From the sequence record ON529852.1: a DNA stretch of 64,000 nucleotides. One strand, 5' to 3'. Position 1 is the first letter of the stretch; every line of letters begins with the position of its first letter. Shown here one piece after another: positions 14,039 to 38,989 of this stretch. The position numbers and the translations under genes were made by a program. The notes under the pieces are model-generated. The model had not been told where the DNA came from. It saw only the letters and a program-made list of their open reading frames with translations, and did not search any database.

Positions 14039-14069
14039 GAAAGGGCTCCTTCCTGAATGGTGGGACGGC

Positions 14070-14096
14070 TGTAAAGGAACGATATTAGGTTGTCAA
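14070..14096 (-). promoter_or_regulatory. class A promoter TTGACA-N11-TTCCTTTACA
   Basis: repeated motif; divergent from cadherin-gene promoter. Confidence 0.8.
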
Positions 14097-14112
14097 TCAC
14101 AGGCGAACTGAT

Positions 14113-14152
14113 TGCCGTAATTATTGACACTGAGCATGGTTAACGCTATAAG
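14113..14152 (+). promoter_or_regulatory. class B promoter TGCCGTAATTATTGACA-N17-TATAAG
   Basis: one of five copies. Confidence 0.8.
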
Positions 14153-14213
14153 GAATGCCTCAAAATGCCGCGTTTTTGTCGTGGCTGACAGCCCTCCCAC
14201 CGGTACAAAAAAC

Positions 14214-17200
14214 ATGGCACCTGTCCGCACGAAGCGCATCGCGCTCGTCTCTACGCGCATCCCTAACTATCCGCATCGCAAGAAGGATGGAGGGGGATCA
14301 GGCGGCGGTTCGGGTTCCGGGCCTCAGGTCCATGACATCGTCTTTGACGGTCCCGCCCTGATCACCGAGGGCGCCGCCGCCGGCACCGTCGTGGCCGGCG
14401 TGTCCTCGCTGCCGCCGGAAGCCGAACTGACCCTGGTCAACGACGCCGGCGGGCGCTTCGCCCTGGAAGACGGCGTTCTGATCGCCGGTGCGATCCCGAC
14501 CGACTACGAGGCCGCGACCCAGCACACGGTGGTCATTCGCGGCGCGCTCGGCGCCAGCGCCCTGGACAAGCCCCTGGTCGTCTCGGTGGTCAATCTGGTG
14601 GAACTGGTCGACTTTGACCTGACCGGACTGACGGTGCGCGAAGACGCCGCTCAAGGCGCGGTCGTCGGCGTCCTGTCGTCTGATCCGACGGGCGCCGCCT
14701 TCACCCTCACCAATACCGCTGGCGGACGCTTCGCCCTGTCGGGTTCGAACGTGGTGCGCGGCGCGACCGCGCTCGATTATGAAGCCGCGACCAGCCACGA
14801 CATCACCATCAGCGCCGCCCTGGGCGGCGAGGTCATCAACAAGACCTTCACCATCCAGGTCACCGACGTCGACGAACTGACCAGCTTCGCCCTGTCGGCC
14901 AACACCATCGCCGAGAACTCTCCGGCCGGCACCGCCGTGGGCACGCTGTCGTCGGTCCCCGCCGGCGCCACGTTCACCCTGGTGAACAACGCCGGAAACC
15001 GGTTCGCGCTGACGGGCGGTTCCCAGATCGTCGCCGGGGCGGTCGCCACGGACTATGAGAGCGCCACCAGCCACCAGATTACGGCGCGCGCGACGCGGCT
15101 GGGCGAAACGATCGAGCAGAACTTCACGATCAACGTCACCAACGTCAACGAACTGACCAACATCACCCTGAGCGCGGCGACGGTGGTCGAAAACACCGGA
15201 CCGGGCGTCACGGTCGGCGCCCTGGCCTCGGTTCCGCCCGGCGCAACCTTCGCCCTGACGAACACCGCCGGCAACCGCTTCGCCGTCTCGGGCTCCAACC
15301 TGGTGACGGGCGCGGTCAGCACCAACTACGAAGCCGCGACCAGCCATAATGTGACGGTCGAGGCGACGCGCGGCGCCGACGTCATCACCCGCACCTTCCC
15401 CATCAGCGTGACCGACGTCGTCGAGCCGCTGTCCATCGACCTCGCCCCCGCCGCCATCGCCGAGAACTCGCCCCAGGGCGCCCTGGTCGGTACGCTGACT
15501 TCCGAGCCTGCCGGCGCGACCTACACGCTGACGGATTCGGCCGGCAGCCGCTTCGCCCTGTCGGGCGACACCGTCGTCGTCGGGACGGTCCTGACGGACT
15601 TCGAGACGGCGGCGAGCCATACGATCACGGTGGATGCGGAACTGGACGGCGTGGAAACCTCCCGCACCTTCACCATCACGGTGACGGATGTGGCGGAACT
15701 CACCAACATCGCCCTGTCGAACACCACTGTGGCCGAAAACATCGCCAGCGGCGCGGTGGTCGGCGCCTTGACGTCGACGCCGGGCGGCGCGACCTGGACC
15801 ATGGTGGACGGCGCTGGCGGCCGTTTCGCGATCACCGGCGGCAATGTCGTGCGCGGCGCGACGGCGCTGGATTACGAGGCGGCGACCAGCCACGACATCA
15901 TCGTGCGCGGCACGCGCGGCGGCGAGACCCTGGAGAAGACCTTCACGATCTCCGTCACCAACGTCGTCGAGATCAGCGACATCACCCTGTCGGCCAACAC
16001 GACCCCGGAAAACTCCGTGGCCCCTGCCGTGGTGGGAGCGCTGACGTCGACGCCGACGGGCGCTTCCTTCATCATGACCAACACCGCCGGAAACCGCTTC
16101 GCCCTGTCGGGGTCGAACGTGGTGCGCGGCGCGACGGCCCTGGACTACGAGAACGCCACTTCGCACGACGTGACCATCCGGGGCACCCGCCAGGGCGAGA
16201 CCTTCGACAAGACGTTCACGATCAACGTCACCAACGTCAACGAGATCACCGACATCACCCTGTCGCCGTCCAGCGCGGCGGAAAGCATCGCCCAGGGCGC
16301 GACCATCGGCGCCCTGGCCTCGGTCCCGGCCGGCGCCGCCTTCGCCCTGCTGGACACGGTCGGCGGGCGCTTCGACATCGTCGGCACCAACCTGGTGCGC
16401 GGCGCGACGGCGCTCAACTACGAAGACGCCACCTCGCACCCCGTTCAGGTCCAGGCGACCCTGGGACCGGACACCTTCAACAAGACGTTGACGGTGACGG
16501 TGACCAATGTCGCCGAACTGACGGCGATCAACCTGTCGGCGAACACGATCGCTGAGAACTCCGTGGCGGGCACCGTCGTGGGCGGCCTGACGTCGACCCC
16601 TGCCGGAGCGACCTTCACGATGACCGGCAACGCCGGCAACCGCTTCGCCCTGTCCGGCAACAACGTCGTCGCCGGATCGGTCTCGACCGATTATGAGGCC
16701 GCAACCAGCCACGAGGTGACGATCCAGGGCGCACGCGGCGGCGAGACCCTCAACCAGACCTTCACGATCAACGTGACCGACGTGGTGGAGACCGTGCCGC
16801 AGCCGGAAGAAAGCCGTCCGGCCCAGACCGACATCATGATCACCCAGGAATACGCCTACTCGGGAGCGCCCGACGGCGACCTCATCGGCGTCCTGCTGGC
16901 GATTCCGAAGACGAAGGCGGAGTATTCCGCCTATGTGTCCGGCGTGACCTACACCCTGCTCGACGACGCCGGCGGCCGCTTCAAGCTGGCGACGGGATCG
17001 TCCCATTCGCGTCAACTGCTGGCGGGACCGACGGCGACCAACGACGCCGTCGCCACCGAGCACTCCATCACCGTGCGCGCCGAATGGGGCGCCGGGGCCT
17101 ATACGCGCGATCAGACCTTCGTCATGACGGTCCGTCCCGCCGGATCGATGCGCGGCGGCACCAACCAGGTGCTGGCGGCGGGCACCGCCAACCCCACGGC

Positions 17201-24340: not shown

Positions 24341-24378
24341 TTAATAGTTGACGGCTGCCGTCGAAACTGGTTAATAGT
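24341..24378 (+). promoter_or_regulatory. rtcB promoter bracketed by TTAATAGT direct repeat
   Basis: TTGACG 24348; TTAATAGT at 24341 and 24371; GACGGC-T-GCCGTC palindrome over -35. Confidence 0.65.
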
Positions 24379-24406
24379 GCCAATATAACTGGCAGAGGAG
24401 TCCGCC

Positions 24407-25645
<1,239 letters not shown>

Positions 25646-32968: not shown

Positions 32969-33225
32969 CCGACATCCCCCACAGAGACGACACGTCCAAC
33001 ATGGACGACACGCCTGACATTCTCCCCGGTTACCAGGAGATGCTTCAGGCCATGGCGAAGCCGGGCGGAACGTTGCGGTGCACGGCGGGCCGCGTTCCGC
33101 AAGGCGTGCTGGAGATGGAGGGTTACGGCCTGCTGGAGGTGATCGATTTTTCGCCTGAAGCGGGCGATCCGACCTATGCGCTCACCAAGCGGGGGAAGGC
33201 CTATGTCCAACTCCGCCTCGGCTGA
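32965..33225 (+). CDS. hypothetical protein, possible winged helix
   Basis: LEMEGYGLLEV....YALTKRGKAY. Confidence 0.7.
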   Translation: MTDIPHRDDTSNMDDTPDILPGYQEMLQAMAKPGGTLRCTAGRVPQGVLEMEGYGLLEVIDFSPEAGDPTYALTKRGKAYVQLRLG

Positions 33226-33586
33226 TCCGGCCCAGACGATCGAAACGCTCAAGACGCTGCTTCACGCGCAGCGCGCCATCAGCAACGAGGTCATGACCTA
33301 CCTGCTGGAGCCTGCTGGGCGCGACCGCCTGATCCTGTGTGACAAGGTCCACCGGGCCGACGCGGAACTGCGCGTGGCGCTGAACGGCGGCGGATACGTC
33401 CGCAACCCCTGGCCCGAGGGCGGCTTCACCGCCGAGATGACGCGCGACCGGCGCGCCCTGATCGACAAGATGCGCAAGCGCGCGGACGCGCTGCGCAGCC
33501 TGTTCCTGCGCGACGACGCCGACCTGATGGACCAGGCGGCGCGCGAGATGGAGTATGACCTGCTGGCCTGGGCGGCGCCGCGATGA
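33203..33586 (+). CDS. hypothetical protein
   Basis: GAAGG RBS before ATG 33203. Confidence 0.7.
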   Translation: MSNSASADPAQTIETLKTLLHAQRAISNEVMTYLLEPAGRDRLILCDKVHRADAELRVALNGGGYVRNPWPEGGFTAEMTRDRRALIDKMRKRADALRSLFLRDDADLMDQAAREMEYDLLAWAAPR

Positions 33587-33717
33587 ACGGACCGCCAGAG
33601 CCGCCGCCGATGCAGGTCGTGGAGCGCGGCCTGATCGAGCCCTGGGCGATCTGGCCCCTGATGATTCTGATCAGCCTGTCGATCGCCCTGATCCTGTTCG
33701 GGCTCGTCCTGGGTTAG
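33583..33717 (+). CDS. 44 aa membrane microprotein (not in ORF track)
   Basis: ...WAIWPLMILISLSIALILFGLVLG; ATGA overlap. Confidence 0.6.
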   Translation: MNGPPEPPPMQVVERGLIEPWAIWPLMILISLSIALILFGLVLG

Positions 33718-33905
33718 GGTGGGGCCACGCGATCCAGACCGGCGTCGAGGTGGGCGAGCGCGCGTTGCACCCGGTTGGACAGGGCGCGGACCGGAGCGCG
33801 CTCGCCCGACGGGGTCTGCTGCCGCAGCGCGCCCAGATCATGCAGCAGGGCGTCGAGACGATCCGCAATGGCGTCGGCTTCGCCGATAAGGTCTTCGAGG
33901 GTCAT
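33714..33905 (-). CDS. small helical protein with structured 5' UTR
   Basis: own promoter TTGACG-N17-TAGGTC 34008-33980. Confidence 0.65.
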   Translation of the reverse strand: MTLEDLIGEADAIADRLDALLHDLGALRQQTPSGERAPVRALSNRVQRALAHLDAGLDRVAPP

Positions 33906-33979
33906 GGACAGGGTTCCTGGGTTGGAGCCTGTCCAGGCGCCGGGATGAAGACCCCTGTCCAGGGGCCGCGCGAGCCCCA

Positions 33980-34055
33980 GACCTAGCGCGACGGGCGCGC
34001 GCCGTCAAGGCTTTGGCGCGAGATCGTTGACAGACTGCACCGACTCGGCTACGAC
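33980..34055. promoter_or_regulatory. back-to-back divergent sigma70-like promoters
   Basis: minus TTGACG 34008-34003; plus GAGATCGTTGACA-N17-TACGAC 34020-34055. Confidence 0.75.
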
Positions 34056-34084
34056 GGTTCCTGACGAAGACGAAAGGAGGCCGC

Positions 34085-34387
34085 ATGTACGCCATCATCA
34101 TGTCCGACGCCCGATCGATTGGTAAGAAGCCGGCGCTGAAACTGGGCTGGGTGACCAAGCGCCTGCCCGACGGCAGCTTGCGCGCCAACGTCGCGCCCCT
34201 CTCCACCTTGGGCAATCCGAAATGGTCCAAGACCGCGCGCTACGTGCGGGGCAACCAGGTCGCCCAGATGTTCGGCCCGAACGTCAAGCCGACCTTGGCC
34301 GACATCAAGGCCATCCGGGACCGGATGAAGCCCTACCAGCCTCGCGCCGGCGGATTCGACGAAATGGGGCACTACGGCGGCGTTTAA
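34085..34387 (+). CDS. basic hypothetical protein
   Basis: GGAGG RBS. Confidence 0.8.
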   Translation: MYAIIMSDARSIGKKPALKLGWVTKRLPDGSLRANVAPLSTLGNPKWSKTARYVRGNQVAQMFGPNVKPTLADIKAIRDRMKPYQPRAGGFDEMGHYGGV

Positions 34388-34469
34388 CTTGACGCCGTGA
34401 ATCCTGACAGTTAATGACGCTGATAACGGCAATCACGCCGTCTTCGTCATGCGCCGTTAACCATATTTG

Positions 34470-34485
34470 TTAACCGGTGGTTAAC
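34470..34485 (+). promoter_or_regulatory. CtrA-binding site TTAA-N7-TTAAC
   Basis: TTAACCGGTGGTTAAC; four more TTAA within 34384-34490. Confidence 0.75.
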
Positions 34486-34517
34486 CTTAATGGTCCGGCG
34501 CCCTCCAAGGATTCACT

Positions 34518-35906
34518 ATGCCTTTCGTCTTGATCGGAGGCGCCGTCTTTGGCGTCATTCTGGTGCTCGCCCTTCTGGTCGCGCTCATGCTGCGCCGCGT
34601 CGTTCCCACCAACATGGTCCACATCGTCCAGCGCGGTAAGACGACCATCTCCTACGGCAAGGGCAAGGAAGCCGGCAACGTCTACTACGAGTGGCCCCAG
34701 TCGGTGCCGGCGCTGGGCGTGACCGTGACCCGCTTCCCCGAGAGCGTCTTCGACGTCAGCCTGGCGAACTACGAGGCCTACGACATCGGCCGCCTGCCGT
34801 TCGTGGTCGACATCGTCGCCTTCTACCGCGTCGAGAACTCCGAGACCGCCGCCCAGCGCGTCGCCTCGTTCGACGAACTCCAGCAGCAACTGAAGTCGGT
34901 CCTCCAGGGCGCGGTGCGCACCATCCTGTCGACCAACAAGCTGGAAGAGATCATGCAGGACCGGGCCAAGCTGGGCACCGAGTTCACCGCCGAGGTCAAC
35001 CACCAGCTTCAGGAATGGGGCGTGACCACCGTCAAGTCCATCGAGTTCATGGACATTCGCGACAGCAGCGGTTCGAAGGTCATCGCCAATATGATGGCGA
35101 AGGAGCAGTCGCGCATCGAGAAGGAAAGCCGCATCACCGTCGCGGAAAACCTGCGCGAAGCCGAACTGAAGGAAATCGACGCCGACCGCGTCGTCGAGGT
35201 CCAGAAGCAGGACGCCCAGCAGCAACTCGGCATCCGGACCGCCGAGAAGGAACGCGCCGTCGGCATCGCCGATGAGCAGACGCGCCAGGAAGTCCTGCTG
35301 GAAAGCAAGCTGACCGCCGAGCGCCAGATGGACGTTCAGAAGATCAACGACGTGAAGACGGCCGAGATCGCCAAGGACGTCGCCATCGTCAAGGCCGAGC
35401 AGGACCGCGAGGTTCTGGTGGTTAAGTCGGAAGCCGAGAAGCGCCAGACGGTCATCGCGGCCGAGGCGCAGAAGGAGCGCACCGAGGTCGTCGCCAAGGG
35501 CGATCTCGCAGCGGCCCAGAACGAGGCCCTGGGCCTGCAAGCGATCGGCGAGGCGAAGGCCAAGGCGGAAGAAGCCATCCTGATGGCGCCGGTCACCGCC
35601 CAGATCACCCTCGCCAAGGAGATCGGCGAAAACCAGCCCTACCAGCAGTATCTGATCACGGTCGAGCAGATCAAGGCGGGCCAGGCGGTCGGCACCGAAA
35701 TGGCTCAGGCCCTGAAGAGCGCCGATCTGAAGGTCATCGCCAACTCGGGCGACGTCCAGTCGGGCGTGGGCGCGCTGGGCGGCATCCTGTCGCCGGCCGG
35801 CGGCACCGCGATCGCCGGCGCCCTGTCGGCCCTGTCGCAACTGCCCGAAGGCAAGGCCCTGGTGGACCGGCTCACCGGCGCGGACAAGGCGGCGACCACC
35901 GCCTGA
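34518..35906 (+). CDS. SPFH/band 7 (flotillin-like) membrane protein
   Basis: N-terminal TM, SPFH core, long EA-rich coiled coil, DLKVIANSG. Confidence 0.9.
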   Translation: MPFVLIGGAVFGVILVLALLVALMLRRVVPTNMVHIVQRGKTTISYGKGKEAGNVYYEWPQSVPALGVTVTRFPESVFDVSLANYEAYDIGRLPFVVDIVAFYRVENSETAAQRVASFDELQQQLKSVLQGAVRTILSTNKLEEIMQDRAKLGTEFTAEVNHQLQEWGVTTVKSIEFMDIRDSSGSKVIANMMAKEQSRIEKESRITVAENLREAELKEIDADRVVEVQKQDAQQQLGIRTAEKERAVGIADEQTRQEVLLESKLTAERQMDVQKINDVKTAEIAKDVAIVKAEQDREVLVVKSEAEKRQTVIAAEAQKERTEVVAKGDLAAAQNEALGLQAIGEAKAKAEEAILMAPVTAQITLAKEIGENQPYQQYLITVEQIKAGQAVGTEMAQALKSADLKVIANSGDVQSGVGALGGILSPAGGTAIAGALSALSQLPEGKALVDRLTGADKAATTA

Positions 35907-35928
35907 CGCCTCGGGTTGAGCACGACGG

Positions 35929-35958
35929 AAACGGCCGGTCATTTGACCGGCCGTTTTT
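35929..35958 (+). terminator. intrinsic terminator
   Basis: AAACGGCCGGTC-ATTT-GACCGGCCGTTTTT. Confidence 0.9.
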
Positions 35959-35969
35959 GTGTGTGAGGG

Positions 35970-35999
35970 TTGACAGACAGCATTCCTGACAGGTAGTGA
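35970..35999 (+). promoter_or_regulatory. promoter of NAD operon, TCCTGAC spacer class
   Basis: TTGACA-N18-TAGTGA containing TTCCTGAC. Confidence 0.7.
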
Positions 36000-36007
36000 C
36001 AATCGCG

Positions 36008-36418
36008 ATGACATTCGTTGCTGACCCTCTTGAACCGGCGATCAACTCCGTGACCAACGGCCAGATTCTGTGCGAGACCCTGCCGCCGTGCTTCCGGCTG
36101 ACGTGGCTGGATCATTCGTTCCACGACGCGCCTAAAGGCGCTGAGGCCGCGCCCTACCACCGGGCGCGCGACTTCAAGCATCTTGGCGGCGCGATCGCCT
36201 GGGCGCGCCGGAGGATTTTCCACGGAGAAGCGTTCGGCGACGTGATCGAACTGGTCCGCGTGGACCGCCGGCGCCTGAACGGCGTCTACGCCGAGGAGCC
36301 TTACGAGGCGCGCGACATCACCCTGGCGGGCTTCCTGCCCTGGGATCGGAAAAACTGGAGCGGAAGCCCCACCGAGGTGGTCCTTTCGCGCCCCCACAAG
36401 AGGTGTAACTGGGAATGA
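36008..36418 (+). CDS. hypothetical protein
   Basis: first gene of NAD operon, ATGA-coupled to nadM-like gene. Confidence 0.7.
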   Translation: MTFVADPLEPAINSVTNGQILCETLPPCFRLTWLDHSFHDAPKGAEAAPYHRARDFKHLGGAIAWARRRIFHGEAFGDVIELVRVDRRRLNGVYAEEPYEARDITLAGFLPWDRKNWSGSPTEVVLSRPHKRCNWE

Positions 36419-37527
36419 CCCTTCGAGGCCCGAAGAAGAAACCCGACGTGATGGTCTTCATCGGTCGTTTCCAGCCGCTCCATAACGGGCACCTGGACGT
36501 GATCGCCCAAGCCCTCGCCGCCGCCGAACGGCTGATTATCCTGGTGGGCTCGGCCAACCTGGCGCGCGACACCCGCAACCCTTTCACCTACGAAGAGCGC
36601 GCGGCCCTGATCCGCACCGCGATCGAGCAGAAGTTTGGCGCTGAAACCGCCGCCCGCGTGGTGGTCTGCCCTGTGCCCGACAGCCCCTACGAACTTCAGG
36701 AGTGGATCGAGACCGTCCAGATGACGGTCAAGATGAACACCGTACCGTTCGTGCGGCCGACCATCAACCTGACCGGACACGATCGCGACGAGACCTCCTT
36801 CTATCTGAAGCTGTTCCCGCAGTGGCCCTACGCCGGAGCCGAAGGCGCCACCGATCTCAACGCCTCGGCGTTGCGCGCCGACTACTTCGACGGGGGCGTC
36901 GACCTTTTCAAGAACGCCTGGCGCGACAGCGGGCCGGTCTGGCCGGCGGTGGCGCCGCCTGCGACCCTCGCCTTCCTCCAGGCCTTCCGCGATCGCCCTG
37001 AGTATGCGCGGCTGATGCGCGAACTGAAGGCCGAGCGCGCCTACAAGGCCAAGTATGGTCCAGGCCCTCACGTCACCCTCGACGCGGTGGTGATCCAGTC
37101 GGGCCACGTCCTGGTCGGACGGCGCAAGGGCGAATACGGCCACGGCATGCTGGCCCTGCCGGGCGGCTTCTTGGAGGTCGCGCGTAACGAAACCCTGCTG
37201 GAGGGGGCCGAGCGCGAGTGCTTCGAGGAGACCGGGCTGTTCAACCACTTCGGCCCGGACAATCTGATCACCGACGAACGCCGGCGCATGCTGCACACCC
37301 ACCTGCGCGGGACCCACGTCTTCGGGGACCCGAACCGCTCGCGGCGCGGCCGCCTGATCACCCACGCCCACCTGTTCAAGCTGCCCGACGACTACACCCT
37401 GCCGCCGGTCGAGCCCTGGGACGATCTGGAGGACGTGCACTGGATGCCGATCTCGGACGTCCGCGCCGACGAGTTCTTCGAGGACCACGCCTTCATCATC
37501 GAAAAGATGATCCGGCAGTTCCTGTAA
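36415..37527 (+). CDS. nadM: bifunctional NMN adenylyltransferase / ADP-ribose pyrophosphatase (NadM-Nudix)
   Basis: GRFQPLHNGH, RNPFTYEER, Nudix PGGF...AERECFEETG. Confidence 0.93.
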   Translation: MTLRGPKKKPDVMVFIGRFQPLHNGHLDVIAQALAAAERLIILVGSANLARDTRNPFTYEERAALIRTAIEQKFGAETAARVVVCPVPDSPYELQEWIETVQMTVKMNTVPFVRPTINLTGHDRDETSFYLKLFPQWPYAGAEGATDLNASALRADYFDGGVDLFKNAWRDSGPVWPAVAPPATLAFLQAFRDRPEYARLMRELKAERAYKAKYGPGPHVTLDAVVIQSGHVLVGRRKGEYGHGMLALPGGFLEVARNETLLEGAERECFEETGLFNHFGPDNLITDERRRMLHTHLRGTHVFGDPNRSRRGRLITHAHLFKLPDDYTLPPVEPWDDLEDVHWMPISDVRADEFFEDHAFIIEKMIRQFL

Positions 37528-37561
37528 AACCCAACCACATTCACACGAGGGGGAAATCTCC

Positions 37562-38989
37562 ATGGTCATTCGCGATACTGACGATCTGCCAAACCATCTG
37601 GCGCCGCTGCCCTATAACCTGATCGCCGACACCGACAGCTACAAGCTGGGTCACTGGACGCTCTATCGGAAGGGCACGACCACCGTCTACAGCTACATCG
37701 AGCCGCGCGGCGGGCGTTACCCGGTGGTGATGTTCGCCGGACTTCAGAAGCTGCTCTACGAGAAGCTGGGCCAGCCGATCACCCGCGACCAGGTCGAGGA
37801 GATGGCGAAGTTCGTGCCCGCGCACGGCTTCGAGTTCAACCGCGAGGGCTGGGAGATCATCCTGAACGAGTACGGCGGCCGCCTGCCGCTGCTGATCAAG
37901 GCCGTGCCCGAGGGCCTGGTCCTGCCGGTTCGCAACGCCCTGTTCACCATCGAAAACCTCGATCCGCGTCTGCCCTGGCTGACCTCCTACCTGGAGACGA
38001 TGATCCTGCGCGACCTGTGGACGTCGTGCACCATCGCCACGCGCATCTTCCTGATGACGCAGCGCATCAAGGGCCACTGGGAGCAGCACTCGGACAATCC
38101 CATGAGCCCCTTCGCCCTGCTCGACTTCTCGTCGCGCGGCACCATGGGCTACGACCACTCGGTCATGGGCGGCATCGCCTACCTGTTCCACTTCATGGGC
38201 TCGGACAACGTGCCGGCCGTGCGTGAAGCCAACTACTACTACTTCGAGGAAATGTCGGCCTATTCGGTGCTGGCCGCCGAGCACTCGATCTCCTGCTCCT
38301 TCGGCCGCGACAACGACGACGACTACATCCGCAACTCGCTGGAAGTCGCCAAGCCGAACTCGCCGCTGTCGCTGGTCGGCGACACCTGGAACATCTTCAA
38401 GTTCGCCGAGAAGGTGGTCGCCAACCACAAGGACCTGATCATCAACAAGGGGATCAAGTTCGTCGCCCGCCCGGATTCCGGCGAGATCGCAGACGTCCTG
38501 CCGCCGGTCTTCACCACTCTGGCGCAAGGCTTTGGCACCGACCGCAACTCCAAGGGCAAGGACGTCATCCGCTACGGCGCCGCCGTCCTGCAAGGCGACG
38601 GCATGAACGAGCACTCCCACATGGTGCCGTTCCAGGTCGCCGACGCCCTGGGTCTGGCCCCGGACAGCGTGATCACGGCGGCCGGCGGCGGCCTGATGAC
38701 CGCCGACCTCGACCGCGACACCATGAAGTGGGCGATGAAGGCCTCCGAGATGGTGATCGACGGCGAGCGCGTCGACATCTTCAAGGACCCGATCACCGAT
38801 CCGGGCAAGCAGTCCAAGCGCGGCCGCTTCGCCCTGGTGCGCGATGAAGACGGCGAATTCGCCACCATCAATCGCATCAACGACGCCGAGGACCGCGCCG
38901 ACCTGCTGGAGCCGCGCTTCCACAAGGGCGACGTGATCAACGCCACCACCCTGGCCCAGGTGCGCGAACGCGTCTCGGCCCAACTCTAA
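37562..38989 (+). CDS. nadV: nicotinamide phosphoribosyltransferase (NAMPT)
   Basis: TDSYKLGH, DFSSRG, AAEHS, RPDSG, QGDG, FKDPITDPGKQSKRG. Confidence 0.95.
   Translation: MVIRDTDDLPNHLAPLPYNLIADTDSYKLGHWTLYRKGTTTVYSYIEPRGGRYPVVMFAGLQKLLYEKLGQPITRDQVEEMAKFVPAHGFEFNREGWEIILNEYGGRLPLLIKAVPEGLVLPVRNALFTIENLDPRLPWLTSYLETMILRDLWTSCTIATRIFLMTQRIKGHWEQHSDNPMSPFALLDFSSRGTMGYDHSVMGGIAYLFHFMGSDNVPAVREANYYYFEEMSAYSVLAAEHSISCSFGRDNDDDYIRNSLEVAKPNSPLSLVGDTWNIFKFAEKVVANHKDLIINKGIKFVARPDSGEIADVLPPVFTTLAQGFGTDRNSKGKDVIRYGAAVLQGDGMNEHSHMVPFQVADALGLAPDSVITAAGGGLMTADLDRDTMKWAMKASEMVIDGERVDIFKDPITDPGKQSKRGRFALVRDEDGEFATINRINDAEDRADLLEPRFHKGDVINATTLAQVRERVSAQL

Follow-up and report, generated by a model that had tools for sequence, protein, structure and literature searches.

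What does a CtrA-type box do when it lies in front of a phage gene for a membrane scaffold protein, and with which sign would it act? This question is raised by a 64,000-nucleotide stretch of DNA (the window) from the giant Brevundimonas phage vB_BpoS-Kabachok (record ON529852.1), whose genome comprises 356 kb. In public sequencing runs, at most 10% of the sampled words of this phage were matched.

A single CtrA dyad outside the terminal block precedes an SPFH gene

A preliminary description of the sequence had reported a TTAA-N7-TTAAC box upstream of a phage flotillin gene. This box was recovered as the 16-mer TTAACCGGTGGTTAAC at 34470-34485. It fits the consensus on both strands, because the site is a GTTAAC-N5-GTTAAC dyad (GTTAAC-CGGTG-GTTAAC, 34469-34485, without strand assignment). 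It is located in a non-coding, promoter-proximal intergenic region of 130 bp directly ahead of the gene, with 33 nt between the end of the dyad and the start codon. TTAA-N7-TTAAC was found once in the window, where 0.04 copies are expected, and two matches were reached in 1 of 100 shuffles.

The six TTAA in about 110 bp that had been noted earlier are all present (34384, 34411, 34457, 34470, 34481 and 34487) and make up 6 of the 17 in the window, but the first two are probably unrelated to CtrA. The TTAA at 34384 contains the stop codon of KABACHOK_02990, the gene upstream (34085-34387, plus strand, 100 aa; 54% identical to its ortholog in phage Gurke), and this stop codon varies among sister phages (TAA, TAG or TGA). 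The TTAA at 34411 belongs to GTTAAT, the -10 hexamer of a predicted separate promoter, termed P1. What remains is a core of four TTAA in 34 bp (Poisson probability about 2e-6 from the window's own TTAA density), which includes three direct GTTAACC heptamers at 34456, 34469 and 34480. That TTAA is rare in the window overall reflects composition (17 observed against a Markov-2 expectation of 11.7), and a specific avoidance of TTAA in the genome was rejected, since other TA-containing AT tetramers are just as rare.

Further motifs adjoin or overlap the dyad. The 10-mer GTTAACCATA (34456-34465, plus strand), 13 bp upstream, fits the SciP consensus (G/A)TTAACCAT(A/G) exactly and at the same time provides an extra CtrA half-site; motifs of this type occur 14 times in the genome, six of them outside the terminal block described below. 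The doublet TTAACCTTAA (34481-34490, plus strand) overlaps the proximal half of the dyad. Its copy at the SPFH gene is one of only two that lie outside the terminal block, the other 54 of the 56 genomic copies being within it.

A pattern search of the phage record yielded 72 copies of TTAA-N7-TTAA, of which 71 are accounted for by a terminal block (318.7-354.8 kb) together with position 63 across the record junction. The dyad in front of the SPFH gene, 160 kb away from this block, is thus the sole copy in the roughly 320 kb outside it. With its approximately 70 dyads, the block shows the promoter architecture of phiCbK gp005, gp018 and gp020, and the phiCbK and Kabachok boxes (gp005 and gp018) are of the same sequence type. 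For the gp005 and gp018 boxes, binding of CtrA~P was demonstrated by EMSA and CtrA dependence by reporter assays (PMC9437464). This bears out the earlier statement that CtrA sites are known in Caulobacter phages, and they are documented in Brevundimonas phages as well. By analogy, the terminal block is a phiCbK-type array of about 50 CtrA-bound and CtrA-activated early promoters and as such of an already known kind.

The downstream gene forms a self-contained cassette

The gene behind the dyad (34518-35906, plus strand) encodes a protein of 462 aa that is annotated as 'flotillin protein' in ON529852.1. Membership in the SPFH/Band_7 family was upheld (PF01145, E 5.8e-19, 69.2 bits against a gathering cut-off of 23.6), but the narrower assignment as flotillin was not: the protein reached 35 bits with the FloT equivalog NF058507, for which the cut-off is 700, and a Flot-domain search gave no match even at E 10. 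QmcA and stomatin are its nearest solved relatives. An N-terminal hydrophobic helix is followed by the SPFH domain (residues 30-211) and a long Ala/Glu/Lys-rich region, which in our reading of the sequence would be helical or coiled-coil. Homologs with 50-65% identity were found in Ralstonia, Xanthomonas and Vibrio phages and in bacterial chromosomes. According to a word search the chromosomal ones, about 60-63% identical in Herbaspirillum and Burkholderia, belong to a large bacterial family, and SPFH scaffolds are widespread in large phages of Vibrio, Xanthomonas and Ralstonia. Defence-system and PHROG models did not match the protein, and a literature search on the function of phage SPFH or flotillin proteins returned nothing specific. 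Its role for the phage is presumed to be membrane scaffolding; a link of the CtrA box to lysis timing or membrane organisation, as suggested previously, is pure inference.

An intrinsic terminator (35931-35958, plus strand) with a 10-bp GC stem, an ATTT loop and a T5 tract closes this single-gene cassette; its fold has -33.1 kcal/mol (z -7.3), and the terminator is conserved in the metagenomic relative L010. In Gurke, the same slot is occupied by an unrelated gene of 329 aa. The cassette is moron-like in having its own terminator, its own regulatory region and a variable occupancy of its slot among relatives.

Conservation of the region argues against a stray sequence

The dyad does not vary among five isolates, and its 17 positions are all identical in L010, in which the flanks have diverged. 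A SciP motif of the GTTAACCATA type is lost in L010, while GTTAACCAT is present in the relative L013. In a further relative, L014, the SPFH gene is preceded by GCCGTTAACCTTAACGGC, a perfect 8+2+8 palindrome. In L010 and L014 no TTAA of the locus falls outside the intergenic region that precedes the SPFH gene, and L013 also carries GTTAAC there. GTTAAC elements were kept at this place in more distant relatives, in a different arrangement. The flanking half-sites are not kept in L010, and L013 and L014 show another layout; hence, no strict constraint acts on the exact architecture. Among 27 IMG/VR loci with SPFH homologs, the dyad was absent except in L046 and L047 (40-42% GC), which is near chance level.

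These comparisons bear on the possibility that the dyad is a chance occurrence or a relic, a stray piece of block sequence that was carried in with the cassette and has lost its function. A mononucleotide estimate gives about 0.3 TTAA-N7-TTAA per 320 kb, so that the dyad alone is not overwhelming, and the turnover of the flanking half-sites among relatives would fit this view. However, with the real TTAA frequency the expectation falls to about 0.01-0.02, and three GTTAACC in 31 bp have a chance of about 2e-5 by our estimate. Moreover, the site is intergenic and invariant in six genomes, in one of which the flanks have changed, and in L013 and L014 TTAA elements again precede the SPFH gene. 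We therefore regard this explanation as most improbable.

The dyad lies downstream of a predicted promoter and out of register for activation

Upstream of the dyad, a promoter-like element (P1, 34389-34418, plus strand) consists of TTGACG (34389-34394), a spacer of 15 nt that contains TCCTGACAG, and GTTAAT (34410-34415) followed by GAC. We infer that P1 is a promoter with a weak -10 hexamer, and its transcript is predicted to start near 34422-34424. The pattern TTGAC-N18/19-TANNGAC is present in only two copies in the window, with 0.03 expected. The second P1-type element (35970-36000, plus strand) is located directly before KABACHOK_03010 (ATG at 36008), the mRNA of which is probably leaderless or has a very short leader. 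P1 as a widespread promoter was rejected, as exact copies of the strict motif CCTGACRGKTARTGAC in the genome number two, one on each side of the SPFH cassette, and two further matches with two mismatches lie elsewhere; a similar promoter, TTGACG-16-GTTAAT, was found at 24349-24376. A standard sigma-70 scan of 33900-36500 detected no promoter, a consensus which Caulobacter-type promoters fit poorly. L010, L013 and L014 have kept P1 ahead of the SPFH gene. Just after the predicted start, folding yielded a leader hairpin (ACGGC-AAUCAC-GCCGU, 34426-34441, plus strand), which has the same place in these three relatives despite sequence change, and the combination of P1 and hairpin upstream is conserved in four lineages. 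A Shine-Dalgarno sequence, AAGGA (34507-34511, plus strand), is positioned 6 nt before the ATG.

The preliminary description had implied a simple CtrA-driven promoter, in which CtrA~P at 34470-34485 would recruit RNA polymerase and the SPFH gene would be turned on along with the early genes in cells rich in CtrA. Indeed, the GTTAAC-N5-GTTAAC form is common to the block promoters and the CtrA-activated phiCbK boxes, and the distance from the half-site at 34470 to the ATG, 44 nt, equals the modal distance of the block promoters. In addition, with TTGTTAAC (34467-34474) as -35 and TAATGG (34488-34493) as -10, Caulobacter spacing is obtained by our calculation. The comparison with 51 promoters of the array nevertheless speaks against this proposal. 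There, the distance from the dyad end to the start codon ranges from 40 to 74 nt, a range that excludes the 33 nt of the SPFH gene, and the consensus GCTAG -10 lies at +10, where the SPFH gene has TCCGG (TCCGGCG in the canonical register) and hence no -10 in register; a start in this register would land on the Shine-Dalgarno sequence. In the alternative register the centre of the dyad would fall near -23, between -35 and -10, and the upstream half-site would be 13 bp off rather than 11. The site also lacks further traits of the class I block promoters, in which the dyad ends 40-56 nt ahead of the start codon: it is not part of the terminal block, its spacer is not the T-rich CTCTT, and there is no GAAAAA tract upstream of it. 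In L014, the end of the TTAA doublet is only 20 nt from the ATG, too near for a -35 role, and no space is left for a promoter. The implied promoter could thus not be substantiated, and we consider activation unlikely. Since P1 lies upstream, the dyad, about 50 nt further downstream, would be part of the leader, an arrangement that favours repression or delay over activation.

The leader could also act as RNA

An element placed within the leader that is predicted to be transcribed, right ahead of the Shine-Dalgarno sequence, could equally well function as RNA. An imperfect palindrome of 51 nt (GCGCCG...CCAT...GTTAACC GGT GGTTAAC...ATGG...CGGCGC, 34451-34501, plus strand) is centred on the dyad and could form a hairpin in the leader RNA, which would stabilise the mRNA or tune its translation, with the likeness to a CtrA site being incidental. 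The predicted fold (-32.7 kcal/mol) is better than that of shuffled sequences, with z -3.2 in Kabachok and z -2.2 for the same shape in L010, and the element of L014 likewise is a perfect palindrome. These z-scores are modest, however, and GTTAAC-N5-GTTAAC is always self-complementary, so hairpin potential is built into any such site. Furthermore, the change of TTAATGG to TTAACGG in the isolate Papperlapapp breaks the middle stem without compensation, and an RNA element leaves unexplained why the stem consists of exactly the motifs of the CtrA block. An RNA function in place of an operator therefore appears quite improbable.

Host CtrA, possibly with SciP, is the candidate binder

A protein with a Trans_reg_C domain (PF00486, CtrA-like or OmpR-type) or a DUF1153 domain (PF06627) was not found in the phage; a control search with PF06627, which we take to be the SciP family, did match Caulobacter. 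With no OmpR-type regulator encoded by the phage itself, CtrA of the host is the obvious candidate for binding. This argument relies on the published conservation of CtrA and its motif: the CtrA proteins of B. subvibrioides and C. crescentus share 87% identity, and the motif has been retained throughout the Alphaproteobacteria (PMC9437464). We consider it quite likely, judging from the motif, that CtrA binds in front of the SPFH gene. The spacer of the dyad is GC-rich (CGGTG) compared to CTCTT in the block promoters, which could entail a difference in affinity. The 10-mer adjoining the CtrA box is of the SciP type by sequence and as such a predicted target only; the SciP motif itself stems from a MEME prediction (Fumeaux et al., 2014; PMC4083442).

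A model for delayed expression of the SPFH cassette

Taken together, we propose that 34456-34490 would serve as an operator for host CtrA~P, possibly with SciP as a partner, within the leader of an SPFH cassette that is self-contained and of horizontal origin. The box would lie at about +46 to +62 from P1, or at about -23 if a weak local promoter were used instead. Given this position in the leader and only 33 nt from the start codon, a negative effect is most likely. When CtrA~P is abundant, as in swarmer or predivisional hosts early in infection, the SPFH gene would be held down, and it would be released once CtrA activity falls. By this arrangement a single host signal would turn on the early genes and at the same time hold up the SPFH gene. 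We give roughly an even chance to this reading, in which an operator for host CtrA, possibly joined by SciP, delays or represses the moron-like cassette. A regulator that binds 50 nt beyond a start site does not in every case block transcription effectively. Provided that CtrA binds, repression or delay would be the rather probable outcome from the geometry of the site, activation would be doubtful and the lack of any effect would be very improbable.

In its full form the proposal would make CtrA a two-way timer, with CtrA~P firing about 50 early promoters and blocking the SPFH gene from its leader, SciP adding a G1-specific layer, and the scaffold being made only once CtrA activity is lost in the infected swarmer cell. 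This extended version is tentative and seems fairly unlikely as a whole. If true, the SPFH gene would be the first one wired to CtrA in a phage whose biochemical role can be recognised, and a single host regulator would act both positively and negatively within the genome of one virulent phage. The CtrA-linked genes of phiCbK-like phages are so far of unknown function and all located in terminal repeats, whereas the box at the SPFH gene is single, clean, conserved and off the block, with a geometry from which control of the opposite sign would be expected. It would offer a one-site test of whether CtrA only launches early genes or also delays later ones, and a handle on the role of phage-borne SPFH scaffolds.

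Comparison with known systems

The closest parallel is given by the phiCbK-like phages, in which CtrA sites are clustered in the terminal repeats and were connected to 'lytic deferment' (Mascolo 2022, PMC9437464). Kabachok, published in 2023, was outside the data set of that study. It shares with these arrays the TTAAC-N5-GTTAAC motif, the affiliation to the Dolichocephalovirinae and the same presumed host regulator. The site at the SPFH gene differs in its position outside the block, in its GC-rich spacer and in not occupying the -35 register of a recognisable promoter. Moreover, it precedes a gene with a recognisable domain, while for none of the CtrA-associated phage genes could a function be named (PMC9437464).

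With bacterial SPFH scaffolds (QmcA, stomatin, HflK/C, FloT/YqiK) the Kabachok protein has the N-terminal membrane helix, the Band_7 domain and the Ala/Glu/Lys-rich region in common; it differs from them as the product of a phage-borne single-gene cassette and in scoring far below the FloT equivalog cut-off. The cassette resembles phage morons in its own regulatory region, its strong terminator and the occurrence of its nearest homologs in unrelated phages and bacteria. Unlike these, it resides in a phage of the virulent type and not in a prophage, and it is flanked by two promoter-like elements of the same kind.

In the extended CtrA/SciP boxes of Caulobacter late-S-phase promoters (PMC4083442), an exact (G/A)TTAACCAT(A/G) 10-mer adjoins the CtrA box, as is the case here. 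There, the two motifs usually overlap at the -35 of an activated promoter, whereas the putative SciP motif of Kabachok lies 13 bp upstream of the dyad and within the leader. A precedent for negative control is found in Brevundimonas phage Delta, where clustered CtrA sites are located just upstream of DELTA_120 and CtrA represses 4.5- to 6-fold (PMC9437464). Phage and gene are unrelated to those described here, and Delta has three full sites compared to one full site and two half-sites in Kabachok, but in both cases CtrA sites or half-sites are crowded into the last 80 bp or so ahead of the start codon.

Identity of the locus and of the dyad upstream of the SPFH gene

Window positions 33000-38000 match Brevundimonas phage vB_BpoS-Kabachok at 100% identity (ON529852.1; 356,285 bp, subfamily Dolichocephalovirinae, host B. 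pondensis LVF1), record position 124001 being window position 1. The SPFH locus is common to four sister isolates (Domovoi, Papperlapapp, Marchewka and Bambus; 92.7-98% identity). Both CtrA and flotillin are absent from the text of the paper describing the Kabachok-group phages (PMC10070969).

Positions 34470-34485 read TTAACCGGTGGTTAAC. Since a G directly precedes this sequence, giving GTTAAC-CGGTG-GTTAAC, TTAA-N7-TTAAC is matched on both strands, and this is the single such site within the window (0.04 expected). The CtrA-consensus match of the preliminary description is therefore present, as are its six TTAA (34384, 34411, 34457, 34470, 34481 and 34487), which make up 6 of the 17 TTAA of the whole window. 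A specific avoidance of TTAA was rejected, its overall rarity being compositional. TTAA 34384 coincides with the upstream gene's stop codon and is not constant among the sister phages, and 34411 is part of a GTTAAT hexamer in a separate promoter-like element. The core of the cluster consists of three direct GTTAACC heptamers (34456, 34469 and 34480) and the extra TTAA at 34487. The box is real and non-random, and it is most probably a functional CtrA operator. The surrounding imperfect palindrome (34451-34501) would also fold as RNA (predicted z -3.2; same shape in the metagenomic relative L010, z -2.2), but a role as RNA only is ranked low, because self-complementarity is inherent in any GTTAAC-N5-GTTAAC site and one sister phage carries a stem change without compensation.

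The dyad is the single outlier of a known CtrA system

In the Kabachok record TTAA-N7-TTAA occurs 72 times, 70 of these within a terminal block (318,777-354,815) that is continued across the circular junction by a dyad at record position 63; the dyad before the SPFH gene is the sole one outside the block. Block dyads precede small minus-strand genes with a uniform architecture on the gene strand: (GAAAAA...)CG-TTAAC-CTCTT-GTTAAC, ~9 nt, GCTAG(GGT), a short leader with GGAGA and the start codon. About 51 of the ~70 dyads (locus L006) are such uniform promoters, and many have a distal palindrome, GTTAACCTTAAC-N5-GTTAAGGTTAAC, 45-70 bp farther upstream. The same design is found in the three terminal-repeat dyads of phiCbK (before gp005, gp018 and gp020). 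CtrA~P bound both the gp005 and the gp018 site in EMSA, lacZ fusions in a ctrA-ts strain showed that both promoters require CtrA, and CtrA sites clustered in terminal repeats are a general signature of phiCbK-like phages (Mascolo et al., PMC9437464). The CtrA sites in Caulobacter phages invoked by the preliminary description are thus documented, and the class of the Kabachok block is already known. The SPFH box is part of this phenomenon, yet its single outlier in the Kabachok genome.

Since no OmpR-type (PF00486) or DUF1153 protein was found in Kabachok, host CtrA is presumed to bind the dyads. A GcrA-like domain (PF07750, E 2.7e-11; locus L009, record 114022-114237 on the minus strand) lies outside the window, inside a 555-aa open frame, so that Kabachok encodes a relative of another cell-cycle regulator of its host.

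GTTAACCATA (34456-34465) exactly matches (G/A)TTAACCAT(A/G), a motif derived from SciP ChIP-seq targets (PMC4083442), which has 14 genome copies, six of them outside the block. The other five outside copies (record 189131, 215098, 218797(-), 307193(-) and 138135(-); ~0.5 expected by composition) are possible isolated SciP/CtrA half-site targets. TTAACCTTAA (34481-34490) has 56 genome copies, only two outside the block. In the divergent intergenic region 14039-14215, the spacer of a good Caulobacter-type promoter (TTGACAC, 14 nt, GCTATAAG) contains a minus-strand GTTAAC/GTTAACCATG half-site. Two GANTC (CcrM methylation) sites lie upstream of the SPFH gene, in the P1 spacer (34399-34403) and between Shine-Dalgarno and ATG (34510-34514), and are not significant alone (~0.4 expected).

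The SPFH gene is a moron-like cassette

The SPFH ORF (34518-35906, 462 aa) encodes a hydrophobic N-terminal helix and a Band_7/SPFH domain (Pfam E 5.8e-19), followed by a long Ala/Glu/Lys-rich region, which we read as a putative coiled coil. Of the 'phage flotillin' proposed earlier, SPFH/Band_7 membership stood and FloT identity did not: the protein scores 35 bits against a FloT equivalog cut-off of 700, the Pfam search gave no match besides Band_7, and by sequence the nearest solved relatives are QmcA and stomatin, so that 'SPFH scaffold with flotillin-like architecture' is the safe name. Ralstonia phage RP13, Xanthomonas phages X1 and BUDD and ~37 Vibrio phages carry homologs with 50-57% identity; the homolog search found none in any other phage of Caulobacter or Brevundimonas. 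Metagenomes and bacteria yielded more than 2,800 relatives, among them a gene standing alone on a Herbaspirillum chromosome and another within a phage-like island of Burkholderia.

A strong intrinsic terminator (35931-35958, z -7.3) lies at the 3' end of the gene. The window holds two copies of a promoter-like element, TTGAC-N18/19-TANNGAC with inner TCCTGACAG (0.03 expected), one before the SPFH leader (P1, 34389-34418) and one past the terminator, upstream of KABACHOK_03010 (35970-36000); these two contain the only exact genome copies of the inner motif CCTGACRGKTARTGAC, which has two 2-mismatch matches elsewhere. In the related phage Gurke the flanking-gene orthologs are kept and the slot is occupied by an unrelated 329-aa gene. 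The SPFH gene is a cassette with moron-like behaviour.

P1 itself reads TTGACG, 15 nt, GTTAAT, and both P1 and a small hairpin just after it (34426-34441) are kept in all four lineages examined. A P1-like TTGACG-16-GTTAAT precedes another gene at 24349-24376. The intergenic region there (24341-24420, after a TelA-like gene) contains the promoter-like TTGACGG, 15 nt, GTTAATAG, and this P1-type element explains its small TTAA cluster, which is not CtrA-like. Within 35970-36010, the second P1-type copy stops 7 nt short of the KABACHOK_03010 ATG with no visible Shine-Dalgarno between them, which suggests a leaderless or near-leaderless mRNA.

Conservation beyond the isolates

Metagenomic contigs with closer SPFH relatives were compared. 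In L010 (SPFH 91% identity, same synteny) the 17-nt dyad is unchanged amid divergence of the two half-sites beside it and of a large part of the surrounding leader. L013 (86%) lacks the dyad, and its P1 -35 is flanked by GTTAAC and GTTAACCAT; in L014 (82%) a palindrome, GCCGTTAACCTTAACGGC, reaches to 20 nt upstream of the ATG. All TTAA of the fetched L010 and L014 loci are confined to the SPFH upstream intergenic region. Because all three keep TTAA-type elements in different arrangements, these are maintained before the SPFH gene while their arrangement turns over, as likewise reported for terminal-repeat CtrA sites of phiCbK-like phages (PMC9437464). SPFH homologs in 27 viral contigs of other hosts had no such sites, save for near-chance matches in two AT-rich contigs. 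In these two IMG/VR contigs of 40-42% GC, TTAA-N7-TTAA(C) lies 30-75 nt before the SPFH homologs (L047:524-539, TTAAGTTCAATTTAAC followed by AAGAGG; L046:571-585), probably by chance.

Predicted sign of control

The 51 promoter-proximal dyads of the block end 40-74 nt (mode 41-44) before the start codon, and a GCTAG-type -10 starts ~10 nt past the dyad. The SPFH site (34469-34485), in contrast, lies 33 nt from its start codon, has TCCGG at the -10 position and a GC-rich CGGTG spacer instead of CTCTT, and lacks the upstream A-tract. P1 is ~50 nt upstream of the dyad and, if it is the promoter, the dyad would occupy roughly transcript positions +46 to +62. Alternatively, a weak local promoter (-35 TTGTTAAC, 34467-74; -10 TAATGG, 34488-93) would place the dyad centre near -23, between -35 and -10; a box at -35 is normal for CtrA-activated promoters (PMC11264516). 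With either promoter, these positions suggest that CtrA would obstruct RNA polymerase rather than assist it. Given CtrA binding, delay or repression of the SPFH cassette is rather likely and activation doubtful. With this geometry, a CtrA operator at the site would be predicted to delay or repress an acquired SPFH cassette. That lysis timing or membrane organisation might be tuned to the cell cycle, as envisaged in the preliminary description, is conceivable. The closest known parallel comes from Brevundimonas phage Delta, whose DELTA_120 is repressed 4.5- to 6-fold by CtrA through sites clustered immediately upstream of its start codon (PMC9437464).
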